Source of the DNA: Octopus sinensis | Taxonomy: Eukaryota | DNA: 41,924 bases | Assembly: GCF_006345805.1 (NCBI RefSeq) | Contig: NW_021836859.1 | Location: 1 to 41,924, forward strand | Direction of reading: 5' to 3' | In this document: positions 1,887 through 41,924 of the stretch, in pieces | How positions within the stretch are numbered: position 1 is the first letter of the stretch | How the letters are laid out: each line of letters starts with the position of its first letter | Made by a program: the position numbers and the translations under genes | The notes under the pieces: model-generated | Databases searched by the model: none | What the model was told of the DNA's origin: nothing | The model's input: the letters and a program-made list of their open reading frames with translations, nothing else

Positions 1887-2273
1887 GGATGGAAGCACTC
1901 CGTTGGTTACGACGATGAGGGTTCCGGTTGATCCGAATCAACGGAACAGCCTGCTCGTGAAATTAACGTGTAAGTGGCTGAGCACTCCACAGACACGTGC
2001 ACCCTTAACGTAGTTCTCGGGGATATTCAGCGTGACACAGTGAGTGACAAGGCCGGCCCTTTGAAATACAGATACAACAGAAACAGGAAGTAAGAGTGAG
2101 AGAAAGTTGTGGTGAAAGAGTACAGCAGGGATCGCCACTATCCCTGCCGGAGCCTTGTGGAGCTTTAGGTGTTTTCGCTCAATAAACACTCACAACGCCC
2201 GGTCTGGGAATCGAAACCGCGATCCTATGACCGCGAGTCCGCTGCCCTAACCACTGGGCCATTGCGCCTCCAC
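1887..2273 (-). mobile_element. tRNA-derived SINE (family B head with family C tail), full length with TSD
   Basis: Head ggaggcgcaatggcccagtggttagggcagcggactcgcggtc...gtttcgattccc (A/B-box-like). Flanked by attcc(t/c)ttcatt at about 1875-1886 and 2274-2285. Confidence 0.85.
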
Positions 2274-10200: not shown

Positions 10201-11029
10201 TTGGCTCTGTACAATCTGAGTTCAAATCCCACCGATGTCAATTTAGCCTTTAATCGTTTCGGAGTCAATATCACAAAGCACCAATTGAGCCCTGGGTTCG
10301 ATGTAATCGGGTGACCCCCGGCTCTAAATTTACATATCTTGTACCAAAAATTGAAGTAATTAATAAGGAGGAAAGCTGGCAGAATCGGTAGCACCCCGGA
10401 CTTAGCGATATTTATTCCGATTTTATGTTCTCAGTTCAAATGCCACCGAGGTCGACTTCACTTACCTTCCTTTCGAGGTCGATATAATAAGTACCAGTTA
10501 AGCACTGTGGTTGATGTCATCGACTGGCTCCCACCTACCCATTTTCTTTTGCGCTATTTTCAACCAATCCCAGTGTTCAGCTGGCATTTATTCTATCGAC
10601 CCCGAAAGGATGAAATGCAAAGTCAACCTCGACGAAATTTGAATACCGAAAGTAAAGACGGACAGAATCCCGCTAAGCATTTTGTCCGTCTCCATCTTCT
10701 GAATTCAAACTGGAATTTGTTGATCCTTTTATTTCTTATTTGTAGTTCCTTATTCTACAATGCCTCCCCAAGTCTCGTTTGGGACAAAATCATATTTAAA
10801 AAAATGTATTTGCGCTCAAATCTCGGCGAGATTAATTTTTTTATTCATTCTTTCGAGAACGACTTTGTTTTTCGTCCTTTCGGTGTCGATGAAATAACTA
10901 CCAATTGACTATTAGAGTCGATATGATCGAAATAACCCTTCCACCCCAACCCCACCAAATTTCAGGACTTGTGCTTAGAGTAGAAAGAGTTATTTTGCCC
11001 CGTAACCAGATCCCATCCAAATTGTCTGA

Positions 11030-16135: not shown

Positions 16136-16575
16136 GCAATAATGAAACGGTACATGCGGCGAGCTGGCAGAGTGGTTAGCACGCCGGTCGAAATGCTTAG
16201 CTGTATTTCGTCTGCCGTTACGTTCTGAGTTCAAATTCCGCCGAGGTCGGCTTTGCCTTTCATCCTTTCGGGGTCGATAAATTAAGTACCATTTACGCAC
16301 TGGGGTCGATGTTTTCGACTTAATACCTATGTCTGTCCTTGTTTGTCCCCTCTGTGTTTAGCCCCTTGTGGGTAGTAAAGAAATAGGTATTTCTTCTGCC
16401 GTTACGTTCTGAGTTCAAATTCCGCCGAGGTCGGCGTTGCCTTTCATCCTTTCGGGGTCGATAAATTAAGTACCATTTACGCACTGGGGTGGATATAATC
16501 GACTTAATACCTATGTCTGTCCTTGTTTGTCCCCCCTCTGTGTTTAGCCCCTTGTGGGTAATAAAGAAATAGGTA
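16136..16575 (+). mobile_element. SINE family A with tandem body-plus-tail duplication
   Basis: Head, body, tail, aaagaaatagg|tatttcttctgccg, body, tail. Confidence 0.9.
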
Positions 16576-16849
16576 CATGTGTTGCTTCTATATGCATACT
16601 GGATACATTTATCCGCGGATGGCTGTATGGATGCTTGAAATAAATGGCTATACGTGCGTGCGCACATGTGTTTATAACTGTAAGCATGCGTGTAAGAATG
16701 AGTATGAGTGTTGAGGGAGGGCAAAAATGGAGTGATATTATTTTTAACACTGCACTATCTTTTGATGGGTTTTAAAGATGTAGGCAGACAACATTAAAAC
16801 TTCCCTAGTCTCCAGAGACAGTCTAGCGGGATTACAATTCTCCACATTG

Positions 16850-16914
16850 TATATATATATGTACACATGCATATATATATATATATACATATATATAAAT
16901 AGATATATATATAC

Positions 16915-16995
<81 letters not shown>

Positions 16996-17018
16996 CCATA
17001 TATATGTATATATATATG

Positions 17019-17069
<51 letters not shown>

Positions 17070-17173
17070 GTATATGTAATATATATAATATATGTATAGA
17101 TATAATAATATATATATCTATATTGTATAATGTATATGTATATATATATATATATATATATAATGTATATGTA

Positions 17174-17204
<31 letters not shown>

Positions 17205-17209
17205 GATAT

Positions 17210-17250
<41 letters not shown>
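16850..17250 (+). repeat. (AT)n-rich microsatellite
   Basis: Direct inspection. Confidence 0.95.
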
Positions 17251-17252
<2 letters not shown>

Positions 17253-17329
17253 CGCACATGCATACATACAGATATGCATATAAACATACATAGATACAAA
17301 CATACTGTTTCTGTGTTGATGAGATTTGA

Positions 17330-17615
17330 GATTTGGAGATAAGCCACAACGACAGTGAAAAATATTTCAGCATGAATAACACCGATAACAGCATTGATAA
17401 CAACATGTAGCAACACTGATAACAACATAGATAAAAATAATAACAATATTGATAATGGCGTTGATAACAATATTGGTGAAGAAGTTGATGATAAGGCCAT
17501 TAATATTGTTGATAAGAGTATTCATGAAAATATTAACAAGAGCAGCCAGAGAGCGCAAACCTCCGCCAAGGTAACACCGACGTCATCTCAACGATTAGCC
17601 AGAGATGAATTTTAA
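17330..17615 (+). pseudogene. Frameshifted coding-like segment with Asp/Asn-rich IDNN repeats
   Basis: [25 protein letters not shown], then a +1 shift, then [29 protein letters not shown]...RLARDEF*. The 12-bp att-gat-aac-aac units vary at codon level. Confidence 0.3.
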
Positions 17616-18009: not shown

Positions 18010-18222
18010 CCTTTCTACAATAGGCACAAGGCCTGACATTTAGGGGACGGAGATAGTCGATCACATCGACCCAGTGTTTCACTGGTACTTAATCTATCGA
18101 CTCCCGAAAGGATGAAAAGCAAAATCCATCTCGGCGGACTTTGAACTCAGAACGTAAAGACAGACTAAATACTGCTAAGCATTTTGCCCGGCATGCTAAC
18201 GCTTCTGCCAGTTCGTCGCCTT
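18010..18222 (-). mobile_element. SINE family A (tail type 2)
   Basis: Reverse complement of the family A head and central domain. Confidence 0.85.
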
Positions 18223-22047: not shown

Positions 22048-22370
22048 TTGCGTGGCTTAGTGGTTAAGATTATTTGGCTTGCGAAAATAACGATAGTGAG
22101 TTCGATTCTCGGCGGCCCTTTGCATTCTTCAGCAAGACACTTTATTACCCGTTGTTCCAGTCCACTGAGCAGGTGAAAAAGAGTTGTACCTGTATCTCAA
22201 AGGGTCAGTTTTGTCACATTCTGTGTTACACTGAATCTCCCCGAGAACTACGTTAAGTGTACGTGTGTCTGTGGAGTGCTCAGCCACTTAGACGTTAATT
22301 TTACGAACAGACCATCCTGTTGATAGAACCAACTGGAAAACTCATCGTCGTAACCGACGGAATGCCAGCT
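22048..22370 (+). mobile_element. SINE family C
   Basis: gcgtggcttagtggttaag head, cagcaagacactttatt central domain, shared tail. Confidence 0.85.
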
Positions 22371-22587
22371 ATCCACTTTTTCAAAGACAGTAGTATATGG
22401 TATGATGCAGTTTGACTGCTACTTCTTGCAGGTCAAGCAACCACATAGATTCTCCTTCGTTAGCTTATACGTGATAATGTTCACTGGGTATCCGAAAACA
22501 TTTATTATTAAAAACACCAAAAAATCCTATGTTTGCTTAATGTTACGCTGAAAATAACACGGAATAGCTAGATTGTTAAGTCTGACA

Positions 22588-23143: not shown

Positions 23144-23357
23144 GTTGACAGCAAACCTCTCCGATGGTCGTCAAAACCGAGCCTACGAGGAGATTACCCA
23201 AACCCTGGGAGCCTTATTTCGAGATTACGACAAAAATGTTGCCCCGCAAATGCACTACTTGCAGCCGGTCATGGTCTCATTGAAAGTAACCGTGGATCAC
23301 GTTTATTCCTTTGATCCGGCTGAGCAATCATTACATTCTTTGTTAACATTGGAAACG
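23144..23357 (+). CDS. Cys-loop ligand-binding-domain (AChBP-like) exon
   Basis: gatcgcag| ... |gtaagt. LFRDYDKNVAPQMHYLQPVMVSLKVTVDHVYSFDPAEQSLHSLLTLET matches the Y-D-K-x-V-x-P, beta1 and D-x-x-x-Q pattern of nAChR/AChBP. Confidence 0.9.
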
Positions 23358-24074
23358 GTAAGTCTCTAAGATGGTTCAGCTTTTGTTTCTCTGTTGTTTA
23401 ATTACAAGATACTCTGTTTTGGTTTTTGTTTTCTACTGAGGTAAAATCCACCCAGCCAACCATTTTCTCCATCTGCTATTCTGTGGGTAGAGTTCTTTGG
23501 CATCTCCACCATAGCGCCCTATCAGAAACAACCATCATTAAAATTATTCAATTGTGTTCTGAAGGCACCGTGGTCTAGTGGTTAGGATGTTGCATTCACA
23601 TTCGCCAGATCGCAGGTTCGATTTGCACACCGGACAGCATGTACTATTCTTCAGCAAAAACACTTTATTTCAGGTTGCTCATGTGTTGCCTGTGGATGGG
23701 CACGTCAAAAGAATAGACCCAAAGTTTCCTCTATGTGTCAGTAGAGTGGCATTTTATCTAGGGGAGTTTTAAAGCAATAAACGATTATGATATGAACTAT
23801 CTAATGGTGAGAACTACAGAGGTTTGCTGGCACTTATTCTATCGGTCTCTTTTGCTGAAATGCTAAGTTACGGGGACGTAATCTGTTTCATCTATAAGAT
23901 GCAAGGCGCTCATTGTTAGTGCTTCGTGTTTGAAGCTCCGATGAAGCTATAAGGTGATACTTAAGCACGCAAGATATAATATATATATATATCTTATATA
24001 TCATATATATATTATACATATTTTATATATATAATATAATATATTTGATATATATATATACACACATATATATA

Positions 24075-24106
<32 letters not shown>

Positions 24107-24175
24107 TTGGGTCGCCATGCTTGACCGCTAAATCCACATGATTTTTAAAAGATTCTCTGTTTATTTACTCTTATT

Positions 24176-24213
24176 CCTTTCTGTTGAAGAGCGTAGGCTG
24201 GAAACTTAAAAGA
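24176..24213 (+). ncRNA. Degenerate minimal hammerhead-like motif
   Basis: ccttt-CTGTTGA-a-gagc(gtag)gctg-GAAA-ctta-aaaga; core and stem mismatches. Confidence 0.3.
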
Positions 24214-24720
24214 GTTTTTCACTTTCCCTAGCGTCAAACTAATACACCTGTTTGTTGTTCAAACACCTGTCTTCGTTTTTTGTTTTTCTATAAATTTCAA
24301 CTATATATATATTTATGTATGTATTAATGCGATGGGGATCAAAAGGTTTTTGACAAATTAACTTGGAAGCAATTACGCGTGTCCTTAGCTAACTGATTAC
24401 TCTGAAAATAAACGCCAAACGTCGCATGGATATCAGCTGAAAATATAGGATAGCTGTTTACACTTGACTGAACTAGAGCCACATGAGAAGATGTGTTTTG
24501 CTCAGGAACAACGCACCACCCGCTCCTGGAACCGAAACCACGATTTTGCGATCGTCAGTACAACACCCTAACCACTACGGTACACCCTTTCACATATGAA
24601 GTTGTAAGATACATGATACGTTTTTAAAGTATGATAATATTTACTGCTATAAAGCCCTACGAGGTTGTATAATACGATGATACGGTAACATTAATAAAAT
24701 ATTTTGTATATCATTTACAG

Positions 24721-24821
24721 AGCTGGTCGGATCGACGTCTCGCTTGGTATCCCACCAAACAGCGAAGCTTTCGCCTCAATAATATATCAGTATGGGAACC
24801 AAGTGTCTACTTCGTAAATGC
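24721..24821 (+). CDS. AChBP-like exon
   Basis: tttacag| SWSDRRLAWYPTKQRSFRLNNISVWEPSVYFVNA |gtaagt, containing W-x-D-x-x-L-x-W and W-x-P-x5-N; phases 0 and 2 match the neighbouring exons. Confidence 0.92.
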
Positions 24822-24881
24822 GTAAGTTTGAAAAAATGGTTATTTTTACTTTCATTTTAGCTTGGTTATTTTTATTTTCAT

Positions 24882-25420
24882 ACTAGCTTAAAAGCCGCAC
24901 TCCGTGCGAACTATTAAGCTAGCTCCTGCGGAGGGCTACTTGGGTCTGCGACAGCCCAAGACAAACGAGAGCTAAACAGCATGACTATGATACGTCTATG
25001 ATGACTATATGTCCCGGTGATGTTTGATCTGAGGTTAAGGACGGATGAAAATTAATTCTGCAATGGAATCATTCTGTTGTTCCAGTCCCAAGTTGAATCT
25101 CAACTGTTGACCTTTCTGTCTTAAAGTGCTTACCTAGACGAAGCGAATGTCATTTATCTCCCCTTGATCTCTGGCGTCATCTGACAAACGCCACCAAGAT
25201 GGCGTGAATCATCCAAGCTTTACCTGCTAGAAATAGCGATCCAAATGCTTTTTAATCAGATCCTAATGCTGGATGTTCAGGAACCAAATGAAGGGCAGAT
25301 TTTCAATGCCGGGATTACCCTGATTCCAAAAAGGTCTGATATGTCTATGTAGAGCAAATGTAGGCTGAGATACAGTTATCGCACCCGGACAGACAGAATG
25401 TCGCTTTTATTAATATAGAT
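24882..25420 (+). mobile_element. Helentron/Helitron-like non-autonomous element (intronic)
   Basis: Begins actagc plus hairpin cgcac-tcc-gtgcg; ends cggacagacagaatgtcgcttttattaatatagat. Same architecture as 31655-32023. Confidence 0.55.
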
Positions 25421-25684
25421 GGTAACTGTCGAACAGGCTTTCAATTGTTTGTTGGTTTACTGTATTTCTAACGGTGAGGACGACGAGGAATTGCTTGTGC
25501 AATTCAATGCAGAAGAAATACAATCGTTTATCCTTTATCCGTTTTTTGATTAATGCATAATAAAAAGCAAAAGCAAACATTAATATGCAACTTCTTGCTA
25601 TTTCCTGTAAATGTCTAATATAAAAGCAATTGTTTCAATTTATATATTTTTTCTCTTCCTTTTTTTTTCTATTCTATACATCAG

Positions 25685-25991
25685 TTTATCGGCAGTGGAC
25701 TCCGCCGCTGAACCAGCCATCAGACTGGAATACAACGGCAACTTGAACAAGTATCAGAAAATATCATTGAAGACATACTGTCCGACTGAAAAAGACCAGT
25801 ACAGTTTCTCCTGTCCGTTCATGCTGAAAACATATCCTTTGCCAAGCACACAAGAACGGCTGAGAGTAACAGATTTTGAAGTCAATGACAATTTTCAAAG
25901 CCACCAGTGGAATGCCGAGGTCAATACCAACAAGACACAGATTTATAATCAAGATCCTGTTGTACTTGTTATCGATCTCGAACTGAAATAA
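25685..25991 (+). CDS. AChBP-like terminal exon (Cys loop to beta10, then stop)
   Basis: Long pyrimidine tract then atcag|T (phase 2). ...IRLEYNGNL...LKTYCPTEKDQYSFSCPFMLKTYP...QWNAEV...LVIDLELK*; no convincing donor before the stop. Confidence 0.9.
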
Positions 25992-26142
25992 AAATGATTT
26001 GTGTTTAAGTTTAAAATATAATATAATTCACACCATGTCTCCATTTCTTTCTCGATTTCTCTGTCTTTCTCAGCTTGTCCGTCTACTAAAAGATGATATT
26101 CATATAATTTGAATTATCTCTCTTGGGGATCATGCACTAGAG

Positions 26143-26463: not shown

Positions 26464-26831
26464 TACTAGGGTTTTACCAATTATCTGTCAGATAACACTG
26501 AGAATACTTGCCAAGTACAGATGATTTGTGTTTAAGTTTAAAATAGGATCTAATTGGTAATGTGTTTCCATCTTTCTGTCTATTTCTGTTTTTCCGTTCC
26601 CTGAAAGGAGATGACATTCCTATAATTGGAATTATCTCTCTTAGTTCCTATACAGTAGCGAGTTTTATCTCCCATACGGTAGGTAACGCAGCGAACATAC
26701 TTTCGCACTTATCGCCATTTGCAGATGAAAGCTGCCATCATTAATAGTAAAACGTTAATATTGTTATTAACAATATATATTTATCTAAAATATACAAAGA
26801 AGAAATTTATTTAAATCGATTTAATCTATAG

Positions 26832-27630: not shown

Positions 27631-28235
27631 AAGGCGCATGGCTTAGTGGTTAAGGCATTCGGCTCATGATTGTAAGGTCGTGAGTTCGATTCTCGGCGAC
27701 GCATTGTGGCCTTGAGCAAGACACTTTATTTCACATTGCTCCAGTCCACTCAGCTGGCAAAAATGAGTTGTACCTGTATCTCAAAGGGCCGGTCGTGTCA
27801 CACTCTGTGTCACGCTGAATCTCCCTGAAACCACATTAAGGGTACACGTGTCTGTGGAGTGCTCAGCCACTTGCACGTTAATTTCACGAGCAAGCTGTTC
27901 CGTTGATCGGATCAGCTGGGACCCTCGACATATGGAATACACAACTCCCTAAAACAAGCATTTCGTCGATTGCGGTGACAAGGGTTTCAGTTGACCCGAT
28001 GAATGGAATATTCTGCTCGTGAAATTAACGTGCAGCAAGTGTCTGAGCACTCCGCAGACAAGTGTACCCCTAACGTAGTTCTCGGGGAGATTCAGCGTGA
28101 CACAGAGTGTGACAAGGCTGGTCCTTTGAATAACAGGTACAATTCATGTTTGCTTGCTGATTGGACTGGAGCAACGTGAAATAAAGTGGTTAGGATATTC
28201 GTGAGCCGCATATGCTAATCACTTAGCCACGTGAC
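27631..28235. mobile_element. Two family C SINEs in tail-to-tail inverted orientation
   Basis: Plus copy 27631-27928 and minus copy about 27945-28235 share the gtgtcacgctgaatctcc... tail. Confidence 0.8.
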
Positions 28236-31492: not shown

Positions 31493-31588
31493 TTATCGAA
31501 TAACCTTTGCAGAGTGGTCTGGTGGTCGTTCCATATATTGACGACCTTGCTTGGCCCGTTCAGCCTGCATGGCTATATAACGTTGATT
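31493..31588 (-). CDS. NDUFS5: NADH dehydrogenase (ubiquinone) Fe-S protein 5, last coding exon
   Basis: NQRYIAMQAERAKQGRQYMERPPDHSAKVIR* fits the invertebrate NDUFS5 tail (KQ-x-x-R-x-x-AM-x-x-ER-x-KQ). It follows a long pyrimidine tract, but the junction reads TG; the in-frame AG alternative starts the exon at 31564. Confidence 0.85.
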   Translation of the reverse strand, partial: NQRYIAMQAERAKQGRQYMERPPDHSAKVIR

Positions 31589-32052: not shown

Positions 32053-32310
32053 ATTACTCTGTTGGTTATGACGACGACGATCGACGGAACAGCCTGCTCA
32101 TGAAATTTATGTGCAAGTGGCTGAGCATTCCACAGACACGTCTACCCTTAACGTAGTTCCAGGGGACATTCAGCGTGACAGCCAGCTGAATGCACTGGAG
32201 CAATGTGAAATAAAGTGTCTTGCTCAAGGATATAATGCGTCGATGGGAATTGAACTCATGACCTTATGATTGTGAGCCGAATGCCCTAACCACTAAGCCA
32301 CGCGCCTTCA
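32053..32310 (-). mobile_element. SINE family C
   Basis: Minus-strand head gaaggcgcgtggcttagtggttagggcattcggctcac plus central domain and tail. Confidence 0.85.
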
Positions 32311-35027: not shown

Positions 35028-35228
35028 CTGTTTTATTTTGCCTGCACATTCTTTGAAGTCTTCATACTCCATGCTGCATTCTTTGTTCAAATGGAAGCGG
35101 CCGTAACCGACTCGTGAGACACACCTGTAGAAATCCAGCTCAAGGTCACCACACTGTGTAAACTGGTGATTGAACCAATGCTCTGACATTTTCGTCAGTG
35201 GATTGTAGAGAAGTGGTGCTGAAGTCAT
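35028..35228 (-). CDS. NDUFS5: NADH dehydrogenase (ubiquinone) Fe-S protein 5, first coding exon
   Basis: Acceptor t10-gcag| 8 nt before the ATG; donor CAG|gtacat. Twin CX9C motifs CGDLELDFYRC and CSMEYEDFKEC with the G-x-x-R linker. Confidence 0.95.
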
Positions 35229-38905: not shown

Positions 38906-39294
38906 AAGAAAATTTTGAGTCAAAAGGAAGAGGGAGTACATTTCAACAGGTCTATTTTGTACTCTCATACTTTCTTAAGGGAATACACCTTGCTTATAAA
39001 CTCCCTCCACACAGACGCATCCTGAGCCTTGTATCTTTGTTGGAAACCGGCTCCCTCCTCAGTGGAAAATTTATAATAATTAAAAACATAGAAGAGACAT
39101 ACATACACGCTTCTCAAAACCAGAAAAGAAAAAGCTAATTCGAAGCCCACAGGTCCAATCCATCACTGGAACTGTAAAAATCTGCAAAACTTCCCAGAAG
39201 TTTATCATTTAAATGTATATGAGCATGTCTAGATATGCAAGTATATGCGAGAAAATATATCCATAAAACAAAACATACAAATCTGCACATATAC

Positions 39295-40050
39295 GTAGAT
39301 ACATAGATACATACATACATACATATATACTTACATACATAATACATACATACATACATACATACATACATACATACATACATACACACACACACATACA
39401 TATATACATACATACATACATACAAACATACATACATACATACATACATATATACATACATACACACAGACTTACATACAAACATACATACATACATACA
39501 TACATACACACAGACATACATACAAATATACATACATACATACATACACACATACATACATACATACAAACATACATACATTCATACATACATATATACA
39601 TACATACTTACATCCATCCATACGTAGGTACATATATACATACATACATACATTCATACATACATACATACATACACACATACATACATACATACATACA
39701 CACATACATACATACATACATACACACATACATACATACATACATACATACATACATACATACATACATACATACATACATACATACATACATACATACA
39801 TACACATACATCATACATACATACATACAAACACAACACACATACATACATACACACATACATACATACATACATACATACATACACACATACATACACA
39901 CACACATACATACATACAAACATACATACATACATACATACATACATACATAACATACACACACACACACACATATATATACACATACATATATGTGTGT
40001 ATGTGTGTGTATGTGTGTGTATGTATACAAATACACACATACACACACAT
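39295..40050 (+). repeat. (CATA)n/(CA)n microsatellite, about 750 bp
   Basis: Direct inspection; source of the MYVC ORFs. Confidence 0.95.
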
Positions 40051-40510
40051 AAATATTCGCCCCTCCTCTTCTCTCTCCCGCTCCTTCTCCCCTCGGGACT
40101 TTCTTCTTTCAAAGTCTTCATATCAATTTCCGAATCTAAATATCTTAATTAAAGAAATAAAAAAAAATATTTCGATCAAAGAAACCCGAAACCCGAAATC
40201 GGGAAAAGATTGCGGTGTTTGTGACAGCAGTGACTTAGGAAACAAGTATTTCAAGAGACGTGATGGTCATCTTAATTATAGATTATAAGATGACCATCAG
40301 CCAGCGTTTCTTGACCAATGAGAATTGCTGCAGACGCAAACAAATTAGAAGATGAAGATATGCTAACGATACATCTCGTGGTCATTGCGCGTGCAGCCGC
40401 AGTAGCAGGGGCAACGGCAGCAGCAACAGCCGTAGCAGCAGCAGCAGCCGCACCAGGAGTAATTGATGATTTGCAGTTACCACTGCCGCCACCTCTATAA
40501 CCACCACCAT

Positions 40511-40577
<67 letters not shown>

Positions 40578-40714
40578 AATTCTGCTGCCGTTGCTGCTGC
40601 TGTTGTTGCTGCAAGAAGTTTAGAAGTTGCTCCAGCAGCTGTAGTAGTGGTAGTAGTGGTAGTAGTGGTGGTGGTAGTAGTAGTTGTAATAGTAGTAGTA
40701 GTAAAACAAAGCGA

Positions 40715-41025
40715 TGAACGTCGCCCTTTTGAAGCCTAGCCAGGCTCATGGGTCCGGTTTCCCGGTTTCTGTGGCGTATGTGCCCCCCCCACCCAAGCTG
40801 GACAGTCCATCGCCGTGGTACTCAAGAAACAACAGGAAGAGAGAGTGAGAGAAAGTTGGGGCGAAAGAGTACAACAGGGGTCGTCACCACCCACTACCGG
40901 AGCCTCGTGGAGCTTTTTTTGGTTGTTTTTGCTCAATAAACACACAATGCCCGGTGTGGGAATCGAAACCGCGATCTTCCGACCGCAAGTCCGCTTCCCT
41001 AACCACTGGGCCATTGCGCCTCCGG
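40715..41025 (-). mobile_element. tRNA-derived SINE family B
   Basis: Minus-strand head ggaggcgcaatggcccagtggttagggaagcggacttgcggtc. Confidence 0.85.
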
Positions 41026-41184
41026 TAGTAGTAGTAGTAGTACAATGAAATTGAAAGAGAATGATGAAGCTGCAAAACTAGAGGAAGAGAAGGGGAGGAG
41101 AAGAGAAAAGAGGAAGAGGGAGAGAAAGAGAACCAAAGAGAGAGAGAGAGAGAGAGAGATAATGTGGTATAAAACTGACATACG

Positions 41185-41191
41185 GATAGAT

Positions 41192-41278
<87 letters not shown>

Positions 41279-41283
41279 CAGAC

Positions 41284-41344
<61 letters not shown>

Positions 41345-41349
41345 CAGAC

Positions 41350-41392
<43 letters not shown>

Positions 41393-41437
41393 TAGATAGA
41401 TAGATAGAAATAGATAGATAGATAGATAGATAGATAG

Positions 41438-41528
<91 letters not shown>

Positions 41529-41552
41529 TATAGATAGATAGATGGATGGATG

Positions 41553-41609
<57 letters not shown>

Positions 41610-41622
41610 ATATAGATAGATA
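41185..41622 (+). repeat. (GATA)n microsatellite
   Basis: Direct inspection; source of the YLSI ORFs. Confidence 0.97.
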
Positions 41623-41924
41623 GAGGGAGAGAGAGAGAGAGAGAAAAGGAGAGAGAGCAAGAAAGAAAAAGGGAGAGCCAGAGAAAGAGAGATAGGGCAC
41701 AGAGAAGGAGAGCAGGGTCTGTATAAAAATTGACGAAGTATTGTAGAAAACAAAGTCTGCGACGACGAAAGAGAAGTTTTGGAATAAACATTGGTTGAAA
41801 TGAAAAGGAACTCTTCATTAATTTCTGGCAGGCAAATCTATAACCCTGCAACATGAATTCTTCAATTCTGTAAGTACTCAATTAACATCAAAAGAACCAA
41901 AATCTGTAGTTATGGCTGCTTGGA

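Follow-up and report, generated by a model that had tools for sequence, protein, structure and literature searches.

A channel-less ligand-binding-domain gene of octopods belongs to a mollusc-wide family that lacks the cholinergic pocket

The 41,924-nucleotide contig NW_021836859.1 of Octopus sinensis (assembly GCF_006345805.1) is a whole unplaced scaffold of this octopus, and is referred to here as the window. It carries three of the four coding exons of a gene for the extracellular ligand-binding domain (LBD) of Cys-loop receptors. Our results show that the gene does not encode a truncated receptor, but a member of an old, mollusc-wide clade of LBD proteins that lack a transmembrane domain (TMD). 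It is intact and under purifying selection, and is not a relic. We estimate a probability of roughly 0.6 that it specifies a selected, secreted and N-glycosylated LBD-only protein, which arose as a tail-less offshoot of this clade and serves as a soluble binder of something other than acetylcholine, or as a decoy. A preliminary description of the window had already proposed a soluble receptor homologue. For want of other genomes, it missed the mollusc-wide family of tailed proteins, which reframes the window protein as the soluble counterpart of putatively tethered paralogues rather than as a lone truncated receptor.

The part of the gene within the window comprises the following features.

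1-23143, forward strand: 3' part of intron 1 (window position 1 aligns to position 18118 of Octopus vulgaris L001)
23144-23357, forward strand: coding exon 2, with the mature N-terminus, the alpha1 helix, beta1-beta2 and the loop D region
24721-24821, forward strand: coding exon 3, the WSDRRLAW ... VWEPSVYFVN region, with beta2-beta3 and loop A
25685-25991, forward strand: last coding exon (exon 4), with beta5-beta10 and the stop

The three exons are in phase and total 622 nt, which gives 206 codons followed by TAA. The splice boundaries of all exons are canonical, with AG on the acceptor side and GTAAGT on the donor side, and the reading frame is open. The first base of exon 2 is the third base of a Gly codon begun in the upstream exon, while exon 3 ends with two bases of a codon that is completed by exon 4. 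The preliminary description had given the same three phase-matched exons and 206 amino acids ending in LVIDLELK and a stop. Its exon borders were right overall, with the ends of exon 2 and exon 3 each shifted by a base or two.

The upstream exon, which encodes a signal peptide (MQPPVTLYNWVSLTLFVCVLLG), was identified solely in the O. vulgaris orthologue, where it ends in a GT donor. Judged from the O. vulgaris chromosome, it lies ~8.1 kb past the 5' end of the window, and a search of every frame of the window found no exon encoding a signal peptide. In the chromosome-level assembly of O. vulgaris the full gene is complete, with four exons. It starts at L001 10001 and spans 34.2 kb, of which intron 1 takes up ~31 kb. 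The corresponding model, CAI9740372.1, has 228 amino acids and is 100% identical to the 206 amino acids of the window; the product of exon 2 alone matches residues 23-93 of this orthologue (P0001) with 100% identity. The O. sinensis model XP_029657928.2 falls in the same 90% cluster as CAI9740372.1. Database models of the gene exist in three octopus species, where they were automatically named 'acetylcholine receptor subunit beta-like', as was CAI9740372.1 itself. The earlier figure of about 230 amino acids with the signal exon is thus correct for the gene, but could not be read from the window, because that exon lies off the scaffold.

The 206-amino-acid product matches the Pfam domain Neur_chan_LBD (PF02931) with E=3.2e-19 and 69.7 bits, against a cutoff of 26, which is well outside the range of chance. 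Further matches include the solved ectodomains of nicotinic acetylcholine receptors (nAChRs), 5-HT3, ZAC and GLIC. An AlphaFold2 model, built from an alignment of 70 sequences, reached a mean predicted local distance difference score (pLDDT) of 92.5 and a predicted template modelling score (pTM) of 0.82. In a Foldseek comparison this model showed the ectodomain fold seen in pentameric ligand-gated ion channels (pLGICs), where the nAChR alpha1 extracellular domain (ECD), GABA-A subunits and the molluscan acetylcholine-binding proteins (AChBPs) all scored E~2e-14 at 15-18% identity. Both the domain match and the beta-sandwich fold place the product among the ectodomains of the superfamily. Its main features are:

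23154-23162, forward strand: NLS sequon in exon 2
24781-24789, forward strand: NIS sequon in exon 3
25779-25814, forward strand: shortened hydrophilic Cys-loop CPTEKDQYSFSC, C159-x10-C170
25929-25937, forward strand: NKT sequon in the short loop C, exon 4
25959-25985, forward strand: strand beta10 of the AlphaFold2 model, residues 219-227 of 228

The window protein hence has three N-glycosylation sequons, one of which is conserved: throughout the clade that lacks the TMD, loop C commonly carries an N-x-T sequon. In the AlphaFold2 model the protein ends one residue past beta10, in line with the preliminary description, which had placed the C-terminus at this strand.

Beyond beta10 the superfamily normally continues into the four-helix transmembrane domain (PF02932), which the window gene does not have. 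Several features of the 3' flank bear on this absence.

25989-25991, forward strand: TAA stop, following LVIDLELK
25987-25992, forward strand: AATAAA polyadenylation-signal hexamer, overlapping the TAA stop
31493-31582, reverse strand: last coding exon of NDUFS5
35028-35228, reverse strand: first coding exon of NDUFS5, with a twin Cx9C motif (Pfam PF10200, E=5.9e-6)

Every reading frame closes directly 3' of the stop. NDUFS5 is convergent with the LBD gene, and 5.5 kb separate the stops of the two genes. The neighbour therefore bounds the space in which a transmembrane exon could have hidden. We searched for such an exon with tblastn, using 64 full-length pLGICs of 380-560 amino acids as queries, and with a hydropathy scan of the downstream DNA. 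In the window, in O. vulgaris L001 and in Argonauta L002, tblastn matched only the three LBD exons. As a control with a search space of comparable size, the M1-M3 regions of 50 receptors were each matched by the other 49 queries, with a median of 40 queries and never 0. The earlier statement that no transmembrane exon precedes the convergent NDUFS5 gene is thereby confirmed by a search with a working control. A nested arrangement, with transmembrane exons beyond NDUFS5, was rejected as well, since there was no transmembrane match anywhere in the 41.9-kb scaffold. Likewise, translations and blastn of the DNA 3' of the stop revealed no relic of a tail in the Octopus gene or in either of the two Argonauta genes. 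One hydrophobic out-of-frame open reading frame at ~26027-26090 was considered as a possible tail relic and discarded, as it is T/C-rich, of low complexity and not conserved.

The 3' flank also contains a small repeat. A 35-nt stretch (25993-26027, ATGATTTGTGTTTAAGTTTAAAATA...) is found again ~530 bp downstream, at 26520-26554, with 91% identity, and behind each of the two copies lies another short match. Either a local duplication or an insertion whose flanks were duplicated may account for this.

The position of the stop is conserved. The C-terminus ending in LVIDLELK is identical in O. vulgaris CAI9740372.1, O. sinensis XP_029657928.2 and O. bimaculoides XP_052832247.1, while three tail-less genes of Argonauta hians (P0003, P0004 and gene B) end in ...LVLD(L/F)ERKN and a stop. 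The stop position is thus common to six genes of four species. Moreover, P0003 and gene B flank NDUFS5 in Argonauta, so the gene neighbourhood is conserved too.

To assess selection, a 4.6-kb stretch around the exons was compared between the O. sinensis window and O. vulgaris. Differences were seen at 5 of 622 exon sites and at 124 of 3930 aligned non-coding sites (3.2%; binomial p=8e-5), which means that exon divergence is a quarter of that of the flanks. All five exon differences are synonymous third-position changes, with 0 non-synonymous differences (dN=0, dS=0.039). O. bimaculoides differs at 12 of the 206 residues. Residues of the core fold are invariant, and so are the two cysteines of the Cys-loop. 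For the Octopus-Argonauta comparison dN/dS was unusable, since dS was saturated. The earlier view of an ectodomain gene without a TMD is supported: the gene is genuine and selected, has a signal peptide in the orthologue and keeps its stop after beta10.

The young duplicates in Argonauta evolve fast. In the pair that flanks NDUFS5, exon 3 is identical at the nucleotide level (L002 13423-13521, forward strand, and 21158-21060, reverse strand), while exons 2 and 4 have diverged with dS values of 0.35-0.50, a pattern suggestive of gene conversion in exon 3 alone. The changes between the two genes are concentrated in the beta1-beta2/loop D stretch, at the start of exon 4 and in the Cys-loop.

The acetylcholine-binding site of the window protein has been dismantled. 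Pocket positions were read from an alignment of 98 LBD sequences that included the AChBPs of Lymnaea stagnalis (Ls-AChBP) and Aplysia californica (Ac-AChBP); the two AChBP sequences used match PDB 1UV6_A and 2BR7_A exactly. The correspondence is as follows.

23346-23348, forward strand: loop D, Ls-AChBP W53 replaced by T90
24814-24816, forward strand: loop A, Ls-AChBP Y89 replaced by V125
25833-25835, forward strand: loop B, the cation-pi Trp (Ls-AChBP W143) replaced by Tyr177
Loop F: Ls-AChBP Y164 replaced by N196
Loop C: Ls-AChBP Y185, C187 and C188 deleted, leaving no Y-x-C-C
Loop C: Ls-AChBP Y192 replaced by Q216

The five positions of the AChBP aromatic box are hence V125, Y177, a deletion, Q216 and T90. 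These positions are non-aromatic across the whole family without a TMD, with the consensus D, L/T, M/N, D/N and a gap. The preliminary description had called loops A, B, C and D by eye, and the alignment agrees with all four calls. It had also spoken of a 'rebuilt' pocket. Our results show that the old pocket is dismantled and that loop C carries a conserved sequon, but a new working pocket is not apparent from the data.

A similar departure is seen in the Cys-loop. The mature chain has exactly two cysteines, spaced C-x10-C, with no FPxD motif and no vicinal Cys pair; the sequons, the cysteine spacing and the missing FPxD had all been noted correctly before. The protein thus lacks both the C-x13-C and FPxD signature of the receptors and the C-x12-C spacing and vicinal cysteines of AChBPs. 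The spacing is 10 in 24 of 34 members of the family without a TMD, versus 13 in 44 of 45 TMD-bearing receptors. The Cys-loop is also more hydrophilic in the family, with a mean hydropathy of -1.32 versus -0.76 in TMD-bearing receptors (p=3e-4). A short, hydrophilic Cys-loop fits the absence of a TMD for the loop to touch.

The nearest relatives of the window protein are not receptors. An exhaustive phmmer search against 1.84 billion representative proteins, complemented by a profile search, returned short proteins of 257-310 amino acids as the closest matches. They occur in Argonauta, Octopus, Aplysia, Biomphalaria, Bulinus, Bradybaena, Arion, Patella, Babylonia, Batillaria, Dreissena, Ostrea and Crassostrea, as well as in transcript assemblies. 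A word-indexed homologue search with P0006 gave only 3 proteins. Among the matches were also proteins in which two to five LBD stretches lie in tandem, namely P0012 (from the nematode Mesorhabditis spiculigera, 1215 amino acids), P0030, P0028 and P0033.

Members of this unnamed family consist of a signal peptide, an LBD with C-x10-C and no vicinal cysteines, a variable, disordered Ser/Thr-rich linker and a terminal hydrophobic stretch. Among 30 tails, the median length of the uncharged stretch was 15 residues, with a median of 2.5 residues between its end and the C-terminus; a small-x-small motif lies upstream of it in 27 of the 30. By our own heuristic, this layout resembles a glycosylphosphatidylinositol (GPI) attachment signal rather than a membrane-spanning anchor with a cytosolic end. 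Tethering to the cell surface is therefore the most likely fate of the tail-bearing members. The AlphaFold2 model of the Arion member P0009 shows a confident LBD, a disordered segment at 241-261 and then a terminal helix.

The window protein shares with this clade the C-x10-C spacing, an N-terminal helix of the EEAxQ...FHKY type, the NHxW motif region, the loop-C N-x-T sequon and the missing aromatic box. Examples for comparison are Aplysia XP_012942146.1 (annotated 'AChR subunit gamma'), Biomphalaria XP_055871605.1 ('5-HT3B-like'), Dreissena XP_052251600.1, Ostrea XP_055997404.1, Argonauta GAB1609956/57 and O. vulgaris CAI9740374.1. In contrast to these, the window protein and its Argonauta orthologues are without the linker of ~30-75 residues and the hydrophobic tail.

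A maximum-likelihood (ML) tree of 78 LBDs under LG+C20 recovered the following groups, with support given as ultrafast bootstrap/SH-aLRT (Shimodaira-Hasegawa-like approximate likelihood ratio test).

Family without a TMD, 33 rows from cephalopods, gastropods and bivalves: 100/99
Cephalopod members of the family: 100/99
Octopod tail-less proteins: 100/98
Cephalopod tail-bearing proteins, sister to the tail-less group: 100/96

Every non-octopod member of the family in this tree carries a tail. The simplest reading is therefore a single loss of the tail before the split between Octopus and Argonauta. The exons and phases of the window gene match those of P0006, P0005 and P0003, and the cephalopod tail-bearing paralogues have the same four-exon structure, in which one last exon encodes both beta5-beta10 and the tail. 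Hence, a tail-less form needs only an earlier stop and not the loss of an exon.

Tailed and tail-less genes lie close together. In O. vulgaris a tail-bearing paralogue is found ~14.5 kb upstream on the same strand (L004 40595-44360, OX597837.1). Its model CAI9740374.1, named 'acetylcholine receptor subunit alpha-L1', is truncated to 158 amino acids, although the genome encodes the full tail (...LSTSIWLMVLSCVAVVPTQY and a stop). Argonauta has at least 3 tail-less and 2 tail-bearing genes, of which at least 4 lie within ~45 kb.

How the family relates to the classical AChBPs is less clear-cut. The window protein resembles the AChBPs (PDB 1UV6, 2BR7) in having an ectodomain only, behind a signal peptide known from the O. 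vulgaris orthologue, in its hydrophilic Cys-loop, in its molluscan origin and in its fold (Foldseek template modelling score ~0.7). It differs from them in its low identity (15-18%), its C-x10-C instead of C-x12-C spacing, its lack of vicinal cysteines and the loss of the aromatic box. Furthermore, its nearest relatives carry tails resembling GPI signals, whereas classical AChBPs have none. In two ML trees, Ls-AChBP, Ac-AChBP and an 'AChBP-like' protein of a chiton formed a separate, well-supported group among TMD-bearing alpha-like receptors. A profile of the family searched against the PDB scored best with Torpedo beta (2e-27) and the Alvinella receptor 8BX5 (1e-26), with native AChBPs outside the top 60. 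P0046 was considered as a stand-in for AChBPs and was dropped in favour of Ls-AChBP and Ac-AChBP, as it is closer to alpha-type nAChRs.

These data bear on an alternative explanation in which the window protein belongs with the classical AChBPs, as a divergent orthologue or an early branch of them. Soluble LBD proteins would then have a single origin, with a later loss of acetylcholine binding and tails gained or lost along the way. The common design of signal peptide, LBD and hydrophilic Cys-loop agrees with this idea, as does Foldseek, which scores AChBPs as high as receptor ectodomains. In addition, approximately unbiased (AU) tests did not reject a joint clade of the family with Ls-AChBP, Ac-AChBP and the Liolophura AChBP-like protein (p=0.21; p=0.41). 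Yet both ML trees place the AChBPs elsewhere, the PDB profile search has no native AChBP in its top 60, and the spacing of the cysteines, the vicinal pair and the aromatic box all differ. Moreover, Aplysia, Bulinus and Biomphalaria possess AChBPs and also carry members of the family without a TMD. We therefore consider an AChBP offshoot unlikely. An origin independent of the classical AChBPs is the better-supported reading of the sequences, although it is not established. A preliminary expectation that the protein would not nest within classical AChBPs was thus upheld by the ML trees, but not by the AU tests, which allow joint monophyly.

We found no evidence for a link to the chemotactile receptors of cephalopods, as suggested in the preliminary description. 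CR518 and CRT1 matched the window protein with E~1e-5, worse than ordinary nAChR subunits, and with the family profile squid CRB1 scored 2e-20 compared to 2e-27 for Torpedo beta. The window protein resembles these receptors (PDB 8EIS, 9E6B, 8EIZ) as a cephalopod nicotinic-type LBD that abandoned acetylcholine recognition. However, the chemotactile receptors are full channels with TMDs, and we found no genomic or sequence link between the two. For the other suggested role, that of a toxin sponge, we found no evidence.

A parallel in architecture is provided by the acr-16-like pair of the brachiopod Lingula anatina (XP_013380741.1/XP_013380740.1), an LBD-only protein with and without a hydrophobic tail. 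The Lingula pair consists of isoforms of one gene, one of them ending after beta10, whereas the octopod pair consists of duplicated genes. The Lingula protein also retains the loop-B Trp and the vicinal Cys pair, and groups near the classical AChBPs. In O. bimaculoides, a previous census counted 18 LBD-only and 7 LBD-TM (transmembrane) models among 78 nAChR-like genes (Jiao et al., 2019; PMC6896357). As far as we found, these classes were defined by SMART domain strings only; they were not treated as a clade or sorted from fragments, and tails, pockets and selection were not analysed. Our literature search found no paper on the family as such, on GPI-anchored AChBP-like proteins or on a cephalopod AChBP-like protein.

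How might the octopod protein work? Guided by the signal peptide encoded in exon 1 of O. vulgaris, the chain would enter the endoplasmic reticulum and would be N-glycosylated at its sequons. With neither a TMD nor a GPI signal, the product is predicted to be soluble and secreted. Before the split between Octopus and Argonauta, one duplicate would have lost its tail through a stop directly after beta10, which would have turned a tethered protein into a soluble one. By analogy with AChBPs and receptor ectodomains, the protein may assemble into a ring of five, either as a homopentamer or mixed with its paralogues. Any ligand in the extracellular fluid would be neither acetylcholine nor a classical nicotinic compound, because the aromatic box and the loop-C disulphide are gone. 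The protein could then bind or buffer such a ligand in diffusible form, or be the decoy counterpart of the tethered paralogues. Based on the architecture and the gene neighbourhood, the most likely role is that of a diffusible protein that corresponds to the tethered paralogues, as a binder or a decoy, which we propose with moderate confidence only. A bolder version of this idea, which is tentative and on the doubtful side, is that molluscs own uncharacterised rings of non-cholinergic LBDs held by GPI anchors, and that the secreted octopod copy is a decoy or carrier for the ligand of the tethered form, be it a small hydrophobic molecule, a peptide or a protein.

Several observations weigh against a secreted, ligand-binding protein. 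First, isolated receptor ectodomains can be monomeric, as in the crystal structures of the alpha1 and alpha9 ECDs. Second, the orthosteric site may have no ligand at all, given that the aromatic box is wholly lost and that loop C carries a glycan sequon. Third, the omega values of the Argonauta pair flanking NDUFS5 (0.58 for exon 2 and 0.77 for exon 4; a range of 0.6-0.8) could reflect relaxed constraint instead of ligand-driven diversification. Fourth, our view of the tails as GPI signals draws on a home-made heuristic and an AlphaFold2 helix, and they might instead be single-pass tail anchors. Fifth, the 5' end of the O. bimaculoides RefSeq model XP_052832247.1 deviates and encodes no signal peptide. 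Finally, an exact-match look-up of the octopus gene returned the genome record only, and no transcript or protein evidence. Concerning the fifth point, residues 1-66 of XP_052832247.1 (P0174) form an unrelated N-terminus of 66 amino acids with a transposase-like 'DE...DGW...W' stretch. This looks like a mis-joined exon and not like a cytosolic isoform.

An alternative explanation might be that the tail-less protein does not act on its own, but as a subunit of mixed pentamers with the upstream paralogue bearing the GPI-like tail, or with full-length receptor subunits. It would then be membrane-associated, and would tune or dominantly inhibit its partners. The tandem position of the paralogue on the same strand is consistent with such a partnership, and so is the persistence of two sister cephalopod lineages side by side since before the Octopus-Argonauta split. 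Heteromeric assembly is also the rule in the superfamily. Identity to the tail-bearing paralogues, however, is only ~29-44%, and we regard a partnership of this kind as improbable.

A role without any ligand, for instance in association with a matrix or mineral and with a dead orthosteric site, seems very unlikely. Complete loss of the aromatic box and the loop-C glycan sequon would suit a dead site, and the tail-less gene is present in at least 3 copies in Argonauta, whose females secrete a calcitic egg case. There is reportedly a precedent in biomineralisation, as ACCBP, an AChBP homologue of pearl oysters, is said to bind amorphous calcium carbonate. Yet the shell-less Octopus keeps the gene under purifying selection, and the protein has no acidic or repeat-rich mineral-binding features, which leaves a pure analogy.

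Least credible, and already largely refuted, is the possibility of a decaying remnant or annotation artefact, i.e. a functionless fragment of a receptor gene: the 41.9-kb scaffold is unplaced and rich in repeats, three annotation pipelines disagree on the 5' end, no transcript evidence was retrieved and some of the LBD-only models of Jiao et al. (2019; PMC6896357) are surely fragments, but the gene has an open frame, canonical splice sites, low exon divergence with 0 non-synonymous against 5 synonymous differences, a stop kept in six genes of four species, invariant core fold residues and a complete four-exon counterpart in O. vulgaris.

Repeats are indeed common elsewhere on the scaffold. One family, with the translation '...YRPRKDERQSRPRQNLNS(D/E)RNGRRN...', has copies at 32236-32305 (reverse strand), near 10507 (forward) and at 16320 (reverse), with further copies at 22253-22409 (forward), 1937-2008 (reverse) and 27836-27919 (forward). 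The copy at 32236-32305 was called as a tRNA by Rfam (34.4 bits), while ARAGORN found none. This family is probably a tRNA-derived short interspersed nuclear element (SINE), of which one copy gave rise to the junk N-terminus of the old O. bimaculoides model P0002. Intron 2 contains tRNA-like stretches ('ggcaccgtggtctagtggttaggatg...') at 23566-23650 (forward strand) and, in opposite orientation, at ~24470-24590. They fall below the thresholds of Rfam and ARAGORN, and are probably further SINE copies. Long (TA)n, (TATG/CATA)-type and other low-complexity tracts occupy 23975-24110, 16744-17406 and 39100-41900. At the 3' end, ~2.8 kb consist almost wholly of simple repeats, which may explain why the scaffold remained unplaced.

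If the bolder version of our idea is true, with a tethered and a soluble form for one ligand encoded side by side, this would be a signalling arrangement without precedent in the Cys-loop superfamily. AChBPs have been the key to understanding how nicotinic receptors are built, and are so far known as acetylcholine binders. The family described here would show that the same scaffold has been reused in another way, with no channel and no cholinergic pocket, and in both tethered and secreted versions. The octopod protein would offer a tractable, naturally soluble and probably well-behaved protein for the discovery of non-cholinergic ligands of the hugely expanded nAChR-like repertoire of lophotrochozoans. 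It would also provide a natural experiment on the fate of the Cys-loop and the beta1-beta2 loop once they are freed from the TMD. For the family as a whole, the finding corrects annotations that name such genes receptor subunits.

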